A DNA stretch of 64,000 nt, taken from the sequence record OR699282.2; one strand, 5' to 3'. This document shows, piece by piece, positions 1,039-54,373 of the stretch. Position 1 is the stretch's first letter, and every line of letters begins with the position of its first letter. Under the pieces are notes generated by a model. That model was not told where the DNA came from. It saw nothing but the letters and a program-made list of their open reading frames with translations, and searched no databases. The position numbers and the translations under genes were made by a program.

Positions 1039-3184
1039 ATGAATTATAAAGTTCTACAATATACATACAGTGTTTTGTTTGATTTACATCACAATGGAAG
1101 ATATCTCAATACAATACGAGAAAACACATTCACTCATACTATCTGGATTAATCACTTAATAATGATACGTGAATATTTTGTTAATAGTGAGATAATCATT
1201 CGTGGTAAAAAACAGAAGATAGAACAAGTTAATAGTTTTGGTGGTAAATTAGTACTATCATTTATAGATAGTAATACTAATGAAAGATATAGTATAGATT
1301 TGGTGGACATATGAATTATAAAGATTTCCTACTAACATACAAGATTATTCGAGATTTAGCACACGACAATGATAGCCCTAGTCTAGAAGACACATGCACT
1401 GAAATGATTCATACAATTCGTGGTAAGATTAAAAAAAAATTCAGTACTGTTATTATTGGTGATGACCATGCAGAATTTTCTGATATAATCATTAGACGTG
1501 ATGGTAAAGTTGAGGTTCAGTACTACACTGATTTTGGATTTACCAGTATTCCGTTGGAGATATTCCCTTGGGATTAAATTTAAATGATATACAATTCACT
1601 TATAAGATCCTATATGATTTGTATGATGTATACCTTGTTAGTAACAAAATAGGTTCACATAACCCATACAAAGAACAACCATTTATTGATTTATATATTG
1701 AGTACTTAGATTCAGTAGGTGAATATATAAAAAAGAATTACAGTACTTTTATCGATGGAAATGATAAATTCGATTTCTATGGTGTGCAATCATATAATGG
1801 TATAATCCATGTTCAATTTCAGGAAATAACCGATAGGGGATTTATCGAGATTAAAGTTGTGAAGTTGGTGAATTTATAAGAGGTTACATATGTTATTAAA
1901 TGATATACAATTCACATACAAATTTTTGTATATCCAATACGCTACGGTTGATGCTGGAGAATATCTCTACAGTGAAATCTATCGTTCGGTATGGATAAAG
2001 TTTTTGGATGAATTACATGATTATTACCATGATTTGTGTATAGTTCGTGATAATAAAATATACAAATTCCGCGATATTGTTAGTCATAGCGGTAAGCTAC
2101 GATTGGAATTAAGTACTGATAGTGATGTTGATTGGATTGGTGTAAATTTACTGGAATTGAAGAATGAAAAACAACTTAAAGGAAATACAAGTATTTTATA
2201 AATTCTTATACTTATCATATGTAAAAGATGAGTACTATGAAAGTGTGTATTATTTTTTATGGCAACATTACCGTACTATAGTAAGAGATTTATATATAGG
2301 AAAATCTATCATATCCAATGGTGAAAAATGTATCTGTACGGATGTAGTTAGTTTTAATGGTTCTTTAACATTGTGTTTCAGATGCGATAATAATAGTGGA
2401 TCATTTTCATTAAACGTATATCAGTTAGAAGGAATAAATTTTGAATAAATGTCCATATTGTAACAGTACTCAATTAGCTCGTTTCCGTTTAGATTCAGAC
2501 TGGGCGACTGGTGCTGGTGATTTCTTCCCTATTAATGATGATGCAGAATACACCGAAGAACAGCACAAAGATTTTGATAAATCATGGCGACCTGACATTG
2601 AGTGCATTTATTGCCTTAATTGTGAGCGTGTTCATGACTAAAGCTGAACTAATAGTTCATACATATAAAATGATATCAAGTACTGAGTTATCATATAGTG
2701 CAGATAATCCAGTACTGGATTATTTTGTTGAATTATTGAAAGAGCATTATATTGGTAAATCACTGATTCTTAATAATATTAATTTCACGGTAAAGGATGT
2801 AGCACCTGGAAAAAACGTACTAATAGTATGTGTTACTTCATCTGATAACCCAGTATACCCAATATCAATAATTTTTGAGATATTAGGAGATTTATGAATA
2901 TCATTTTAATGCAGAAAACATATGCTATATTGGTGAAAGATTATTCCATTACTTTCGATTCACAAGAAAGTGCTCTACATAACCTATACAAAAACGTAAC
3001 ACAAGAATACAGAAATATGTTTTCTGACTTAGTAGTAGGAAGGTATTTCAGTACTAGAAAATACCCAAAACTTCAAATAGTTGATGTTTCTTTTTATTTC
3101 AATGGTCATATTACTATTCATAGTTTAGACCAAGATTCAACAACGTACTTAAACTTTTCATTTGATGAGGTAACATTTTTATGA
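1039..3184 (+). other. tandem array of 7 small (about 85-105 aa) paralogous CDS: 1039, 1311, 1568, 1890, 2164, 2634, 2894
   Basis: Shared N-terminal (Q/L)xTYKxL motif and (Y/V)(I/V)G(K/R) motif; overlapping or abutting start and stop codons. Confidence 0.7.
2441..2641 (+). CDS. small Zn-ribbon protein
   Basis: CPYC...CLNC cysteine pairs. Confidence 0.6.
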   Translation: MNKCPYCNSTQLARFRLDSDWATGAGDFFPINDDAEYTEEQHKDFDKSWRPDIECIYCLNCERVHD

Positions 3185-3357
3185 GAACAGTATTTTTTAT
3201 CTGGAGTCTTTTTTCATTGGCAGTACTGACAGTATGTGGGATTTGTTTCCTTTCATCAATTAATACTTGGTATATCAATTTACTATTTCCATTTGTCGGT
3301 GTTGGTTTAGGGTTTACTTTGCATAGTGTATGTAAGGATTACAATGAGAACAAATGA
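3181..3357 (+). CDS. small two-TM membrane protein (58 aa, not in ORF track)
   Basis: Manual translation MRTVFFIWSLFSLAVLTVCGICF...PFVGVGLGFTLHSVCKDYNENK*. Confidence 0.6.
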   Translation: MRTVFFIWSLFSLAVLTVCGICFLSSINTWYINLLFPFVGVGLGFTLHSVCKDYNENK

Positions 3358-3622
3358 AGTACTTATTGCTGAAACAATGAAGATGATTTACAATATCACG
3401 TCAGCACAGAATATGCCCTATCCAACTAAGTCTTTATTGAGGACTGTGTATCTGGGGATAGTACAGGAATACTACAAATCCAAGCACCGAAGCATTATTA
3501 GTGTTTATCGTGATTATGAAAGGATTCGTATTTTATTCTGGAACAAGAATCGAGTACGTTCTGAATGTGACCTAGTGGACTTTAAATTAGAGAATCTTTA
3601 TTGCTATAAACAGGGACAATAG
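3344..3622 (+). CDS. hypothetical protein
   Basis: AAGGA before ATG at 3344. Confidence 0.6.
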   Translation: MRTNEVLIAETMKMIYNITSAQNMPYPTKSLLRTVYLGIVQEYYKSKHRSIISVYRDYERIRILFWNKNRVRSECDLVDFKLENLYCYKQGQ

Positions 3623-3671
3623 TTTAATTCATGATATAATAATGGGTAAGGAACAATAATTAACACAAGGA

Positions 3672-9480: not shown

Positions 9481-9483
9481 TAC

Positions 9484-9516
9484 AAAAGGGATCATATATT
9501 GGTCCCTTTTTCTTTT
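9484..9516 (+). terminator. intrinsic terminator
   Basis: AAAAGGGATCA-TATAT-TGGTCCCTTTT followed by a T-rich tail. Confidence 0.75.
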
Positions 9517-9705
9517 AAGGTACATTATAGTGAATGTAACAACACAGATGTTATTACGAAAAGACTACTTAGAAAATATAGAACGATACTATAGATTGTC
9601 TTTGTATGAAAATAAGCATAAAAATTATAGTTTTGATAAACTACTAAATTCCAGTACTGATGATTATCTATTTTCATCAATGTTTTATGTGAGAGGTTTA
9701 TTATA

Positions 9706-11495
9706 ATGGATAAATTTCACACAGATATAACACAGATAGGTAATCTTATCAATAGTCTAATTACTGATTTAGAAGAAAAGTACTTAGGTCGAAATGTATA
9801 CGTAGAAATGTATGAAACATATGGTGTTATTGATATGATTTATTACAGTGCATTGAAGTGTGAAATACGTTTAACAATATGTTTGTTTGAAAAAAATACA
9901 TTCAACAGAAGTACTGCAATTCGCCAAGTTGGAGTTGATGATATAGAATTATACGAGGAACAATAATGTTTGAGCAGGACTTAGAGATATTCAAAAGTCA
10001 TATTGATTACTTGACTATATTAGAAAATGATTTAACTACAAAGTACAAAGGCATTCGTGTTCTGTGCTGGTATGATGATTGGGATTATAAACGTGAACTC
10101 ACGATTGATCGAATTTATTTCAGTGACGGTGTACTAAATGTACATGGTGTAAATGATTTTGGTCATTCATATACATATTCTAATAATGCTAAATTTAAAA
10201 GGATCTACAATGAATGAATATTATCATAATTTATTCGATTACATAAAACTAATAGATGATCTTTCTTTTGAATTTCTCAGTACTGAAAAAGTTCTTGAAC
10301 CTCTCTATTATGATTGTATTAGTTCACTATGTTTAGATGAAAAAGAGATATTAGCAAACAACTTACCATCCACGGTCTGTACAATCAATGGTTCCAAGGC
10401 ATTAGTGTGCGAGGTTAATTTTCATAAATCACTTAATACAATTGTTTACAAGTTCGATAACACTTGGGTAAATCATGTAACCAGTAATATTAAATCTGTG
10501 AGATTTTTATGAATATAAAAAAATTATTTGAACAAGTAAATTTATTGTACTGGTGTTCAGACGGTTCAGATAAGGAATATAGTGAAGTTTATTTAGAACT
10601 GTTTAGAACTGAAATTCATCAAATTCGAAGATACCTAATTGATAACAAAACTAAAGTACAAGTAAGATACCATAACGGTACGTTAAAGAATGGTGTAATT
10701 ATTGGATTGATAGTTACACGAATGTCTAATAATATTAAAGTTGCAGTTAGATTAATGACTGATGATGGTGTCTACACAATAGAAGCTAGTGAGATTATAT
10801 ATTAAATGGATATACAAACATTCAATAAACTTAAGTACTATGATGATGGTTTTGCATTAATAATTAACGAACTTGATGGAATACCATACGAATATCATAA
10901 TCAAGTAATGAAGATAATAAAATGTATATGTGAAGAATTAAAAAGTATATTTAAAAATGAATATGTTTATGATTTAGGTAATAGTAGCAAAAAACTATAC
11001 ATAAAGAAATTCTGGGGAACGCATTGCGGTTTGATGGTCGATTTAGGTTTAAGTTTAGACGATAATTCTGAATCATGTTCATTATATATAGATGAAATGC
11101 GAATATCATGAGACGTATCAGAATTCGGTGATATAATTTGATTACATCACCAATAGGGAGAAGTTGAAGTGAATGGTTCGTTTTTAACAATATTAGAAAA
11201 GACAACCGAGATGCTTTCTAGCTCGTTAATGCAGATTTTCAGTACTAATAATTTATACAATACCCAGGTGTTAGATTCAATTAATAATAACTATGTGGTA
11301 AGTATATCTGATGAAATATGTCCATTTAACGCGTATTCAATTTATAGTGTAGAAGAGTTTCATATATCCGAGATTCGATGTGGTTTTGGTGCTTGGTTAG
11401 TTCTAAATGAACGTTCAGGGTTGTCTTTATACATCGAAGAAGTTAGTAAATTTATATACAAAGGAGTAGAATATGTTAACCCCAATTATTCTTAG
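9706..11495 (+). other. run of 6 small hypothetical CDS (9706, 9966, 10210, 10509, 10806, 11169), mostly paralog family
   Basis: N-terminal helix followed by KY(L/K)G..V motifs; coupled stop/start codons. Confidence 0.65.
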
Positions 11496-28041: not shown

Positions 28042-28044
28042 TAT

Positions 28045-28078
28045 TGTATGGGACATAATGTCCCATACATGATATAAT
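28045..28078 (+). promoter_or_regulatory. promoter whose -35 lies in a perfect 11-bp inverted repeat
   Basis: TGTATGGGACA-TAA-TGTCCCATACA; GGGACA-N17-TATAAT with TG extension. Confidence 0.7.
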
Positions 28079-28109
28079 GTTGTTATCATAATACAGAAGG
28101 AGATATAAA

Positions 28110-28307
28110 ATGGCTAAACAACCTAAGAAACAAGAACCAGTAGCAAAAGTTAAGAAAGAGAAAGTTATTCAATCTAAAGAACAACGTATGTACGAACAAC
28201 GTAAGAGTGAAACCCTATCCGGTCTACAAGCTCTACGCAAACAAGGTGTACTAACTCGTGCTCAATACCGTGAGATAGTAGCACAAAAAGGTTATTGGGG
28301 CATTTGA
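28110..28307 (+). CDS. small basic protein (65 aa), apparently monocistronic
   Basis: AAGGAG RBS; own promoter; terminator at 28402-28428. Confidence 0.75.
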   Translation: MAKQPKKQEPVAKVKKEKVIQSKEQRMYEQRKSETLSGLQALRKQGVLTRAQYREIVAQKGYWGI

Positions 28308-28524
28308 AGCAATAAACTGGAGTTCATGATAAATACTTTCATAAGAATAATAATACTTTTTATTAATTTAAAAAGAACTCCATGTGTTATTTCAGTTTTT
28401 CATCCCTGTCTTTTGGCAGGGATTTTTTATATCTATATCTTGACAAAAGGAACAAATCATGAGAACATGTATTAAAGGAAGAATGACTTTCCATTAGGTT
28501 ATTTTAACTTAAAGGAGATTTCAT

Positions 28525-51527: not shown

Positions 51528-51832
51528 AAAAATTATTAGTTCCGTTTATTTCTTTTTTAATTATAAGTGGATGTGCCGAACAAGTAAAACTACAATCCCC
51601 TGCACCAATTAAACAAGAAATTCTGTTAGAAAGATGTGATGATGATACACCTCTACCACAAAAAATTATGATTGACAAAAATGGTTTTAAAGGTTATGAT
51701 GGTGCAGAAATTCTTAAAGTACTTACTCGTTGGGATGCAGTCTACAATGAATGTGCTTTAAAACACGACGCATTGATTAAAACTATTCGTGATTTACAAG
51801 GTAAAGATATTAAAATCAATATCAAGGAATAA
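51524..51832 (+). CDS. Rz1: o-spanin lipoprotein (Rz1-like)
   Basis: Lipobox ISG-C; Pro-containing; second Cys pair; overlaps the i-spanin end. Confidence 0.75.
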   Translation: MKKLLVPFISFLIISGCAEQVKLQSPAPIKQEILLERCDDDTPLPQKIMIDKNGFKGYDGAEILKVLTRWDAVYNECALKHDALIKTIRDLQGKDIKINIKE

Positions 51833-51833
51833 A

Positions 51834-52445
51834 ATGAACAAATATCATGTTTACTATACGACAAAATTATCACTTCTTGAAGAATTAAATCAACGAAGTA
51901 CTAAGATGAAACGCTACACTTTAAATGGTATTACTTTTCGATATTTCCCACAAAAAGTTCTTACTTTTGTTAAGAATCCAAAATGCGTGGCATGTGGGAT
52001 TGAAGCTACTGAAGTACGCATTGAACGTTCATTATGTTCTGATCCAGTATATGGTAAACCACATTTAAATGTATATGCTGTATGTGGTCTTTATGAAGTT
52101 TTAATGACAGTTGACCATAATCATCTGGCATCTAAGGGTGGACCTGATTTAGAGTCAAACTTTAATACTATGTGCTCCAGATGTAATCAACTACGTTCGA
52201 ATAAAACTGAAACAGTTGATGAGTTTCTTGAGAAAGTTAAAGGTCGTAATCTTCTCCAAGAACATATGAATAATTTCTTTAATGTACAAAAAAAGAAAAA
52301 TAACATTGACAAGTCGAAACTACTAGAAGAACGTAGGTTACGTCAAGAATTATGGGAAACTGATCATCTATGGCATGTTCGAGAGTTTGGTCGTCATATG
52401 AAAGCTTTGAAAAAAGAACAGAAGAAATTGAATAAACATGATTGA
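51834..52445 (+). CDS. HNH endonuclease
   Basis: CVACG, TVDH..LASKGG, N...MCSRCNQLR. Confidence 0.85.
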   Translation: MNKYHVYYTTKLSLLEELNQRSTKMKRYTLNGITFRYFPQKVLTFVKNPKCVACGIEATEVRIERSLCSDPVYGKPHLNVYAVCGLYEVLMTVDHNHLASKGGPDLESNFNTMCSRCNQLRSNKTETVDEFLEKVKGRNLLQEHMNNFFNVQKKKNNIDKSKLLEERRLRQELWETDHLWHVREFGRHMKALKKEQKKLNKHD

Positions 52446-52497: not shown

Positions 52498-53254
52498 ATG
52501 AAATCTAAAATCTTTTTACCACAATTAATGTGGCATCTAGCAGAGTTAGATGAAAATGATGAATATACGGACTATGGTGCATGGGATGACAGTACTGAAA
52601 CTTTTAAACCAGATGTAAAATATAAAATCATCTGCAATGAAAGCAAAGGACACAAAAGGTGGACTGAAGAATTTGATCTCGTATTTCTTGACATGAGCAC
52701 AAATAAGTTTTATCATTGTAATTATGAACGAGGTTTAACAGAAGATAGACCAGTACAACCATTCAGTACTGAAACTGATGGTATTAAGTGCAATGAAGTT
52801 TCTGTTACCAGAGAAGAAATTATCACTTATCGAACTTTGTGGAAATATTTGTAAAATGCTTAAAGAATTAGATTTTTCAAACTTAGAAATTATCAGTGCT
52901 GTAAAAAACATTTCCGATATGGGAGATGAGAAAGCAGTTCTTGTTACTATTACTTTTGTAAAAGAAAAAGATAGCTATAGCCATTTAACTGGTATTGAAG
53001 AACTAATTCATAAAACCAATCTTGAGAATGATGGTAAACTCATCAAGCTTCAGGCTTCCTACACGCAAAAAACGTCAAATTTTATAGACCTAAATAATGT
53101 AGTCAAGGTGGTATACAATCATCCTGAACACACATATAGGAACACGACAAGAAATGAAAATGTTGCTAACGATTCGAATATTATCGAAGATGTTGAATTC
53201 ATAAACACAATTTTTGATCGTTGTTCTAAGGATTTAAAAAAAGTATACATGTAA
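52498..53254 (+). other. two hypothetical CDS (52498-52854, 52856-53254)
   Basis: ORF track; upstream terminator at 52459-52486. Confidence 0.65.
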
Positions 53255-53283
53255 TGGGACATTATATGTTCCAATGATATAAT
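53255..53283 (+). promoter_or_regulatory. sigma70-type promoter into the non-coding region
   Basis: TGGGAC-N17-TATAAT with TG extension, the same architecture as at 28050. Confidence 0.65.
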
Positions 53284-53289
53284 GTATAT

Positions 53290-53804
53290 AGAAAATGACA
53301 ACGGACATTGAAAAATGGACACTGAGAACCTACTTCTCTTGAAAATGTAAAGGATAGATGAGCTTTACCGTTGTAGCGAACAGCAGAAGAAACCTGTTAG
53401 AGTACTGGCATTCAAACAAACACGATGTAAGACCACGAATCACGGCGACACGGCTGTATAAAGAACTCCGATAAGCATACAGAGAGTTCCTAGATAGATG
53501 TATAAGGTTCGCACCTTACCAGATTTGCTAAGGGAGTTCAAGAATAGCGGACGCAATTTTTACAAGAAAGTTGCGTCCAAAATTTGAGAACAAGTACTAC
53601 TTTGATCGAATAGAGTTAGTACTGAGTGCTGTTGATGAAAAGACCAGCGACCGTTGCATATGACTGCGATAGAGAGAAACCGAGCAACCCGCTTTCGCTC
53701 TCTAAATTTTGGTACAAGAAAGATCCGTCCAAAATTTGAGAAATTCGCAATTCGATAATATCCGATGCCATCATCGTCAAGAGAGACTTAATTGTCTCTT
53801 TTTT
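53290..53804 (+). ncRNA. candidate structured non-coding RNA of about 515 nt, family unknown
   Basis: No credible ORF; raised GC; at least 7 hairpins; bounded by a promoter and a terminator (AGAGAC-TTAATT-GTCTCT plus T run, 53782-53804). Confidence 0.6.
53561..53742 (+). repeat. two 30-nt direct repeats (53561-53590, 53713-53742), 28/30 identical
   Basis: TACAAGAAAG(TTG/ATC)CGTCCAAAATTTGAGAA. Confidence 0.95.
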
Positions 53805-53944
53805 ATTACCTTCATTCCCCTGCGGGGGGATGTAATAGTCCTCAACAAATCCCGTCAAGTTTTTAAAGTACATTATCATTTTCAGAAGGAACTAGTTTAC
53901 GAAGTAAACGCAGTGACTTCTTGAGTTACGAGAGAACGAAGTGA

Positions 53945-54373
53945 ATGAGTAACACAACGAAAATATCCGATAAATCCGAATTAACACAAATGTTATTCAA
54001 AGAATATTTTGAGTTTCAGATAAAAGACGAACAACAATTACCACAGCAATATTTGAAAAGAATTAAAGATCCGTCAGTAATTACTAAAGAAACTAATTTT
54101 TATAATAGTATTTTGGATTTCGTTAAATCAGTTCATACAACAAGACCTATTGTAGTTTTGTTTTTTGATAAATCTATTCCTTTAGTAGTTCCTGAAAATG
54201 TATTTTTTATTTCAGAAACTGATTTAAATAATCAAAGTACTGTAAGTAGATTAAGAAATTGCTTACTTGTAGTATGTGATTCTTCTTTGTATAATAACAG
54301 AATACTATGGGATAGAAGTAAACGCAATGCAGTTTCTGAAATGAATCCTGAAATTACCTTTATTATTAACTAA
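53945..54373 (+). CDS. hypothetical protein
   Basis: ORF track. Confidence 0.6.
   Translation: MSNTTKISDKSELTQMLFKEYFEFQIKDEQQLPQQYLKRIKDPSVITKETNFYNSILDFVKSVHTTRPIVVLFFDKSIPLVVPENVFFISETDLNNQSTVSRLRNCLLVVCDSSLYNNRILWDRSKRNAVSEMNPEITFIIN

Follow-up and report, generated by a model that had tools for sequence, protein, structure and literature searches.

A large structured non-coding RNA of an uncatalogued family in RaK2-like jumbo phages and chromosomal islands of Enterobacterales

Introduction

What is encoded in a G+C-rich gap of a jumbo phage genome that holds no long open reading frame (ORF)? This question is raised by positions 53255-53944 of a 64,000-nucleotide stretch of sequence record OR699282.2 (the whole stretch is called the window below), for which a preliminary description made from the letters alone had proposed a structured non-coding RNA (ncRNA) of about 515 nucleotides (nt). 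In this region the window shows 100% identity to the Escherichia phages PBECO4, SHEFM2K, G17 and Sharanji and 97% identity to 121Q (blastn), all of them Asteriusvirus, i.e. RaK2-like jumbo myoviruses of ~350 kb. Here we show that the locus is an autonomous gene for a large ncRNA of an uncatalogued family, referred to as RNA1 in the following:

53290-53806, + strand, large structured RNA (RNA1), ~515 nt between its putative start and the U-tract, recognised by its homologues and by covariation

Large ornate RNAs are rare in bacteria and phages, the main ones being ribonuclease P (RNase P), group I and group II introns, OLE, ROOL, GOLLD and raiA, and each such class has opened new biology or structural principles. 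The family described here has the hallmarks of these RNAs, namely a size of ~500 nt, two pseudoknots proven by covariation and invariant junctions.

Results and Discussion

A conserved fold with two pseudoknots

RNA1 and its homologues, which range from roughly 430 to 620 nt across the family, share a conserved fold of several domains, which comprises no fewer than 15 helices as well as two pseudoknots (PK1 and PK2). For the covariation analysis 36 unique copies from 11 sequence clusters were aligned in two halves using MAFFT, and pairs were counted for a model built from covariation scans with slid partners as controls; as MAFFT misaligns some of the arms, too few pairs are counted for these. 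Of the cells in the 3' half 95.0% are paired compared to 39–50% with slid partners, 37 of the 52 pairs show compensatory changes and none of 500 shuffles reached the observed values. The 5' half gave 87.9% paired cells (33–46% with slid partners) and compensatory changes in 25 of 38 pairs, so that the covariation across relatives, which the preliminary description had named as a check, was found in both halves. The single-sequence fold has an energy of -130.7 kcal/mol, corresponding to z = -3.4 for the + strand and z = -2.9 for the - strand relative to shuffled sequences. It is the + strand that represents the RNA, because the G·U pairs would read A·C on the other strand. From 5' to 3' the elements of the fold are the following:

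53298-53304, + strand, 5' leader strand of PK2 (ACAACGG), which pairs with the loop 53368-53374; 7 of 8 pairs compensatory
53330-53357, + strand, hairpin P with the conserved 9-nt loop GAAAAYGUA, followed by an invariant AUGAG (53358-53362); 5'-half helices 2 and 3 and alignment
53362-53377, + strand, hairpin Q, whose loop CCGUUGU (53368-53374) is the 3' strand of PK2; helix 4, 100% paired
53380-53457, + strand, helix R (53380-84/53453-57) and helix S (53394-97/53442-45); 99–100% paired, 4 of 5 pairs of R compensatory
53463-53489, + strand, hairpin T (GAACUC/GAGUUC), followed by an invariant GAUAGA; 6 of 6 pairs compensatory
53504-53517, + strand, hairpin U (AAGG/CCUU), followed by the conserved GCUAAGGGAG (53527-53536); from the alignment, 69% paired
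53536-53591, + strand, variable arm X, holding copy 1 of a modular arm (53561-53590); base GUUC/GAAC from the covariation scan
53594-53622, + strand, hairpin H1, whose 7-nt loop AUCGAAU (53605-53611) forms PK1; 3'-half helices 1 and 2
53628-53648, + strand, hairpin D; 100% paired, 4 of 4 pairs compensatory
53649-53664, + strand, joiner GACCGUUGCAUAUGAC, of which the part GACCGUUGCA is invariant; the most conserved stretch of the RNA
53665-53749, + strand, three-way junction of helix A (53665-69/53745-49), hairpin B and arm C; helices 4–6, 98–100% paired
53672-76/53692-96, + strand, hairpin B with the conserved 15-nt loop AAACNGRGCAACCCG; part of the three-way junction
53699-53741, + strand, variable arm C, holding copy 2 of the modular arm; part of the three-way junction
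53750-53756, + strand, 3' strand of PK1 (AUUCGAU), which pairs with the H1 loop; 7 of 7 pairs compensatory, 100% paired
53763-53781, + strand, hairpin E with box 1 (AUCAUCGUCAAG); helix 7, 91% paired, no compensatory change

Helices R and S, the former being a long-range helix, enclose a variable hairpin and the conserved sequence AAGAAACCYGU. The low pair count of hairpin U goes along with a short-loop clade that is misaligned by MAFFT. For PK1 a further compensatory variant was found in a Serratia island (see below). GUUGC of the joiner could additionally pair with GCAAC of the hairpin B loop, where neither side varies.

From the eight stems that had been read by eye, five are kept by covariation, namely GAACTC/GAGTTC, TAAGG/CCTTA, AGTACTA/TAGTACT, GGACGCAA../..TTGCGTCC and AAATTTTGG/CCAAAATTT. 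The other three had to be given up: GAGAA/TTCTC and GTAAAG/CTTTAC conflict with the covarying helices P and Q, and AGAGAG of the stem AGAGAG/CTCTCT instead pairs with CUUUC (53692-96).

The modular arm mentioned above is a direct repeat of 30 nt with 93% identity between its two copies in the window (53561-53590 and 53713-53742) and the general form UACAAnAnAG..CCGUCCAAAAUUUGAG. In the relatives it is found in one of the arms X and C or in both, as if it were a transposable structural module.

Coding potential, Rfam search and promoter

The gap in which RNA1 is located (690 nt) is bounded by the stop codon of the ORF 52778-53254 and by the ATG at 53945; in 121Q it is flanked by gp515, a structural protein gene (window 52856-53254), and by gp517 (window 53945-54373). 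It holds only short ORFs, with 5–13 stops per frame in all frames of both strands. That it is free of ORFs is as first described; it is not the largest such gap, ranking third by length among the stretches of the window without ORFs of at least 100 amino acids (aa), and one of the two longer stretches is an artefact of the window end. The G+C content of 0.40 against 0.31 in the flanks bears out the earlier remark on composition, and it is the sole large gap that is G+C-enriched (0.29–0.36 in the others).

The longest ORFs of the 36 homologues have 40–97 aa, and no ORF conserved in position, strand and frame was found among these members or by comparison of the GenBank annotations. Short hypothetical proteins are nevertheless annotated within the RNA in many deposited genomes (121Q gp516, A4_511, Yen9-04 g347/g348, RaK2 ORF245, 7t3_0445-0447 and Hallingskeid CDS0412-0414; the equivalent in the window is 53616-53879 on the - strand), and such entries as 121Q gp516, A4_511 and RaK2 ORF245 are what speaks for a decayed or unrecognised protein-coding gene, the remaining option being a gap that arose by chance. 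As the annotated ORFs disagree in strand and position between the records they are probably spurious. Moreover, all six frames are interrupted by stops and the substitutions compensate base pairs without any codon periodicity. A coding gene is therefore excluded, and we regard the whole explanation, chance gap included, as having practically no probability. The RNA family would thus correct the annotation of dozens of deposited genomes in which hypothetical proteins have been placed inside it.

Searching the whole window with the 4227 covariance models of Rfam 15 at the gathering threshold gave no match, and the region 53100-54000 gave only noise at E ≤10. Likewise no relevant match was obtained for 16 loci with diverged paralogs and island copies, nor for the copies from E. 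coli and Citrobacter. ARAGORN detected neither a tRNA nor a transfer-messenger RNA (tmRNA) in the window and cmscan gave no match to RNaseP_bact_a/b, in agreement with the earlier statement that hallmarks of tRNA, tmRNA and RNase P are lacking. No description of the RNA was found in the literature, where the supplementary models of PMC10690425 were outside the check. Thus, the family is uncatalogued, being new relative to Rfam 15 and the literature, and the initial proposal of a novel large structured phage ncRNA holds: it is present in at least four genera and shows covariation including two pseudoknots, with no conserved ORF and no Rfam match. The 10,006 candidate phage RNAs published so far have an average length of 67 nt (PMC10690425), and this set could contain fragments of the RNA.

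Transcription of RNA1 would start and end at the following elements:

53256-53283, + strand, sigma-70-type promoter with the -35 element GGGACA, a 16-nt spacer and the extended -10 element TGATATAAT (53275-53283) with its upstream TG
53781-53806, + strand, terminator-like hairpin (stem GAGAGAC/GUCUCUU, 53781-53799) with a U-tract to 53804, read from the sequence

A promoter scan alone was not above chance (7 sites found, 8.2 expected). It is the conservation that supports the promoter postulated at the start of the locus: TGnTATAAT is present at the equivalent position in 32 of the 36 homologues and TATAAT in all 36, 75–110 nt upstream of the AUGAG landmark, which would place the start of the RNA near 53290. 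The intrinsic terminator of the preliminary description stands only in part. A hairpin with a U-tract is present and its stem covaries in the relatives (3'-half helix 8), whereas the scan tool did not flag it and six of the 36 relatives do not have the hairpin.

In the whole window TGnTATAAT occurs fifteen times, thirteen of these on the + strand (e.g. 1481, 1798, 3632, 7518, 11129, 13379, 18833, 20608, 28070, 45583, 53275, 59059 and 61952). Such a number fits with the presence of many promoters for the host polymerase in this genome region.

Distribution among jumbo phages

By blastn the stretch 53325-53857 was recovered from 72 records of RaK2-like phages, which represent at least four genera (Asteriusvirus, Mimasvirus, Eneladusvirus and Alcyoneusvirus). 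The identity is 95–100% within Asteriusvirus, 79–88% in JNE01 and A4 and 66–72% in GAP32, CBB, XbC2, Yen9-04, Serratia BF, Erwinia phages, 7t3, Munch, fENko-Kae01 and EJP2; for RaK2, K64-1 and Muenster the match is limited to a core of 45 nt. IMG/VR was scanned with the core GACCGTTGCA-N20-34-GCAACCCGC followed by a 5'-domain motif and confirmation with the family profile. The core motif, which was used in two of the scans, is invariant partly by ascertainment, and it is equally invariant in the set derived from blastn. Seven IMG/VR pattern matches in GC-rich contigs were chance matches in coding sequence and were discarded.

Each copy occupies an ORF-poor gap of 0.7–0.9 kb. The RNA is located 3' of a sigma-factor gene in RaK2, beside a Dam methylase in XaC1 and between the genes for endonuclease VII and the baseplate hub in BF, Hallingskeid, 7t3 and EJP2, and since the neighbouring genes differ among the genera it has to be regarded as a self-contained unit.

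RaK2-like jumbo phages carry 3–6 diverged full-length paralogs per genome. 121Q and PBECO4 have three copies, which in 121Q (KM507819) are found at ~192.8, 247.4 and 326.9 kb; judged by identity, the phage of the window has three as well. RNA1 corresponds to the middle copy. The copy at ~192.8 kb (L323:2874-3381) lies ~1 kb to the left of the window start and the copy at ~326.9 kb (L055:1674-2179) again between the endonuclease VII and baseplate hub genes; a second copy within the window was sought and not found. Four copies are present in Yen9-04, at least three in CBB and GAP32 and six in one uncultivated virus genome (UViG).

Copies in chromosomal islands and the proposed function

With the core pattern and the family profile, full-length copies were also detected in chromosomal contigs of Citrobacter amalonaticus, Silvania, Buttiauxella, Serratia and other Enterobacteriaceae, in many metagenome contigs and in two of 5426 complete E. 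coli genomes. In Citrobacter, E. coli, Serratia and Buttiauxella they lie next to integrase genes in integrative islands of ~10 kb, one copy per island. The copies outside the phages have retained the promoter, both pseudoknots, for which new compensatory variants occur, and the elements downstream of the U-tract described in the next section (hairpin F, both boxes and module 2). The island of C. amalonaticus P55 (L285:5801-15103, ~9.5 kb) is inserted in a pilin gene region and encodes, in this order, a large serine recombinase, the RNA, orf165, a CI-like S24 repressor, a Cro-like helix-turn-helix (HTH) protein, three unknown ORFs, a small resolvase and GmrSD. The island of E. coli LR-29-1 (L284:15900-26700, ~10.8 kb) is located between ffs and ybaA and holds a tyrosine integrase disrupted by IS3 and a PDC-M45A-like (dual-OB) protein. 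The island integrases belong to two unrelated families, and in the ten islands checked the RNA lies directly 3' of the integrase gene, with the exception of the E. coli island and the metagenome-assembled genome (MAG) L079. As the islands carry defence cargo (GmrSD, PDC-M45A-like), the RNA sits where accessory genes sit. Such RNA-bearing islands of ~10 kb, in which a CI/Cro-like switch and unknown ORFs are present as well, may represent an undescribed type of satellite or defence island. In the L079 MAG a thiamine pyrophosphate (TPP) riboswitch (RF00059, 73.5 bits; L079:5385-5481, - strand) was seen in host DNA ~1 kb from the island RNA copy, to which it is unrelated.

Do phages and islands share anything besides the RNA? 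Among the unknown island proteins only the repressor, Cro-like, LprI, GmrSD and PDC-M45A-like proteins could be identified using PADLOC, Pfam and PHROGs. A tblastn search with three conserved unknown island proteins against 50,697 phage records gave no match, and a blastp comparison of island and window ORFs revealed DUF4326 as the sole shared protein. Thus no conserved component other than the RNA unit was found on both sides, which argues for a host partner or for none. That the RNA is common to giant lytic phages and 10-kb islands with no tested protein shared between them points to an RNA-only function directed toward the host or toward replication. A tree of 98 unique copies places those of the islands at no fewer than four positions among the phage paralog clades, and thus the unit has moved repeatedly between phages and islands.

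Our preferred reading, to which we would give a probability of roughly 0.45 and which is accordingly tentative, is a new class of large trans-acting RNA that works alone or together with host factors. The RNA would be made early and abundantly by the host sigma-70 polymerase and act in trans as a compact folded particle, and its invariant unpaired nucleotides (GACCGUUGCA, the loop AAACNGRGCAACCCG, GAUAGA, UAAGGGAG, AUGAG and GAAAAYGUA) would contact either a conserved component of the host or further RNA molecules of the same kind. It might thereby serve as a decoy, a scaffold or an RNA-only assembly in the manner of ROOL and GOLLD, for which no phage or island protein would be needed. We favour a trans-acting particle because nothing conserved apart from the RNA unit was found in both phages and islands. 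The large number of unpaired nucleotides that do not vary implies that the partner is conserved too, and strong promoters of the host type, together with the presence of several copies, suggest that the RNA is abundant already in the first minutes after infection. Unusually for a large ornate RNA, it is carried by E. coli phages which can be propagated on laboratory strains (e.g. Sharanji on K-12 MG1655), so that genetics, RNA sequencing, pulldowns and cryo-electron microscopy (cryo-EM) are feasible.

The conserved tail beyond the U-tract

The conserved unit does not stop where the ~515-nt locus of the preliminary description does. RNA1 itself extends to the U-tract, and conservation continues for about 160 nt to ~53965 with these elements:

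53811-53834, + strand, hairpin F, UUCAUUCCCC-UGCG-GGGGGAUGU, of the CCCC/GGGGGG type; 3'-half helix 9
53849-53859, + strand, box 2 (AUCCCGUCAAG), a repeat of box 1; unique in the window
53884-53965, + strand, module 2, two hairpins with GAAC...AGUGA loops; overlaps the annotated ATG 53945

Hairpin F is very stable (UUCAUUCCCC/GGGGGAUGAA) and is present in all members examined, i.e. in the 36 phage copies and in those island copies that were read, while its sequence is unique in the window. Its alternation between U·G and C-G pairs points to an RNA of the + strand. Also conserved downstream of the U-tract is the motif CCUCAACAAAUCCCGUCAAG, which is followed by an AU-rich spacer. In the 3' hairpin of module 2 eight of nine pairs covary in the relatives, and the ATG at 53945 lies inside a hairpin of this module, so that this start may be wrong or translationally masked.

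The last ~30 nt of the main RNA, which end with box 1 (CGUCAAG), are repeated after hairpin F and there end with box 2. Between clades the two boxes change together (CGUCAG/CGUCAG in one, CUUCAAG/CUUCAAG in another), and one Serratia island has CGACAA/CGACAA compared to CGUCAA/CGUCAA in its near-twin. Several explanations for the boxes were tried and rejected. Pairing of the leader with box 2 is confined to the Mimasvirus clade and pairing of the hairpin E 5' strand with box 2 is too short to count. A reading as promoters of the minus strand with TTGACG as -35 suffers from a poor -10 that is not conserved, and a segment between the boxes that serves as rolling-circle template was dismissed because all of its frames contain stops and a reverse transcriptase is lacking.

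With the tail in view, several points weigh against the trans-acting particle. A simple stand-alone RNA gene would not need conservation past the U-tract, nor hairpin F, box 2, the AU-rich spacer and module 2. The U-tract hairpin is missing in the six relatives mentioned above. Transcription of the RNA is predicted from promoter and conservation and both of its ends are placed by sequence features, the decoy or scaffold mechanism is conjectural and its partner putative, and the scattering of the island copies over the tree would also be expected if satellites mimicked a cis-acting site.

The last point leads to the main rival, an RNA-primed replication origin, which we consider unlikely. Here read-through transcription by the host polymerase would form a persistent RNA-DNA hybrid at the G-run/C-run of hairpin F and the AU-rich spacer and prime leading-strand synthesis; the 3–6 copies would be origins of the phage, and the island copy would let the islands replicate without replication genes of their own. 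In ColE1 RNA II and in the R-loop origins oriF and oriG of T4 a promoter for the host polymerase is located ~0.5 kb upstream of a G-run with an A/T-rich stretch behind it. Several origins are present in the T4 genome, and the origin transcripts of ColE1 and T4 need no dedicated initiator protein. The layout found here is similar, with a host-type promoter ~520–560 nt upstream of the G6 run and then an A-rich box and the AT-rich spacer. The copies are multiple and dispersed in 350-kb genomes, there is no recognisable replication protein in the islands, the island copies group with different phage clades as mimicry of a helper site would give, and the conserved downstream hairpins could be assembly sites on single-stranded DNA. 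Different from ColE1 and T4, the G-run is preceded by the terminator-like hairpin, which covaries and which, with its U-tract, would interrupt transcription from the RNA into the proposed origin in 30 of the 36 members. The two pseudoknots and many invariant loops far exceed the structure needed by known primer RNAs. Furthermore, there is no conserved antisense-RNA promoter and no antisense regulator is evident, and two weak tests were also negative, as no GC-skew inflection is seen at the locus and none of the plasmids in PLSDB carries the unit.

The repeated tail also suggests a cis-acting transcriptional switch, in which the fold would sense a signal and choose between termination at the U-tract and read-through into the tail and beyond, with the 3' strand of PK1 or the G-run of hairpin F pairing with the AUC(N)C start of each box. 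A structured domain does directly precede a terminator-like hairpin, the ~30-nt tail is repeated with two boxes that change together, GGGAU (53827-31) can pair with AUCCC (53849-53) in place of the C-run, and in the islands read-through would run antisense into the gene of the cI-like repressor. What a switch would control is not conserved: copy A is followed by co-directional genes, copy B by convergent baseplate genes and the island copies by a repressor or an unknown ORF, and no conserved downstream gene on the same strand, as expected for a riboswitch or cis-acting leader, was found when copies A and B were compared with those of RaK2 and of the islands. The pairings proposed for switching involve few bases and lack support from covariation, and a domain of ~500 nt is several times larger than any known riboswitch aptamer. 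We therefore see little chance for a switch.

Comparison with known RNA classes

In size class, long-range pseudoknots and invariant junction nucleotides RNA1 is similar to RNase P RNA and group I introns. It differs from both in that their covariance models are unmatched even at E ≤10 and in that it lies outside any gene. An RNase P RNA was rejected, since the P4 (CR-I/CR-V) topology is not matched, the pseudoknots being formed by leader and Q loop and by the H1 loop and the strand after helix A. Group I and group II introns were rejected as well: neither Intron_gpI nor Intron_gpII gave a match, the RNA is preceded by a promoter of its own, and the genes on either side of copy B and of the island copies are encoded on the opposite strand.

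The likeness to the RNase P and group I cores in size, pseudoknots and invariant junction nucleotides is also what could indicate a new large ribozyme or a self-processing mobile RNA element, with the joiner, the three-way junction and the 15-nt loop as active site and the identical boxes as sites of processing or ligation. The two boxes are indeed identical to each other yet differ between clades, as paired reaction sites would, and the unit has moved repeatedly between phages and islands. None of the ribozyme models in Rfam was matched, however, and an internal guide complementary to boxes 1 and 2 was sought without finding any conserved position. In addition, the paralogs occupy conserved, ancient positions, which argues against recent mobility. 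Such a ribozyme thus appears very improbable. A broader possibility, rather unlikely as well, is that RNA1 is the founding member of a new catalytic or self-assembling RNA class that is traded among mobile elements of Enterobacterales and acts without a dedicated protein. An RNA of this class might manipulate a central machinery of the host or serve in the processing or priming of nucleic acids, and the paired, co-varying 3' boxes might be its reaction or switching sites.

What we take to be resemblances to J11/12 of E. coli RNase P, the 23S sarcin-ricin loop, the rrn boxA and the 16S leader were given no weight and were not used.

Closest to the trans-acting particle that we prefer are ROOL (RF03087) and GOLLD (RF01998), large ornate RNAs of phages and prophages that form cages according to cryo-EM (PMC12286853). 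Like RNA1 they are many-helix, pseudoknotted RNAs (500–800 nt) which are carried by phages or prophages and need no cognate protein. In contrast to RNA1, which is found in Enterobacterales, their hosts are Lactobacillales and rumen organisms; cmscan with the Rfam models revealed no match in sequence or structure, and RNA1 further differs by its 3–6 paralogs per genome and its conserved downstream tail. Another large phage RNA is ncRNA002 of the jumbo phage PA5oct, an abundant transcript of 451 nt from an ORF-free locus with high levels from early infection on (PMC7318152). PA5oct belongs to the same broad clade as a more distant relative, and both loci are ORF-free jumbo-phage loci, that of PA5oct having ~450 nt. 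As a homologue ncRNA002 was rejected, since no shared motifs were seen on reading the sequence and it was not retrieved by blastn; homology is thus unsupported. Taken by kind the nearest known RNAs are ROOL and GOLLD, by layout it is ColE1 RNA II, and by size and topology RNase P RNA and group I introns.

Further observations in the window

Besides the RNA1 gap the window has other long ORF-poor stretches, namely 2898-3671, 9481-10152, 993-1567 and 28042-28524, which are as AT-rich as their flanks. The extended -10 sequence TGATATAAT is present in three ORF-poor stretches other than that of RNA1 (at 3632, 1481 and 28070), and all four regions look like promoter regions and not like structured RNA genes. 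Three genes upstream of RNA1 an ORF for an HNH endonuclease (121Q gp513) is located at 51789-52445, which is unlinked to the RNA in the other genera.

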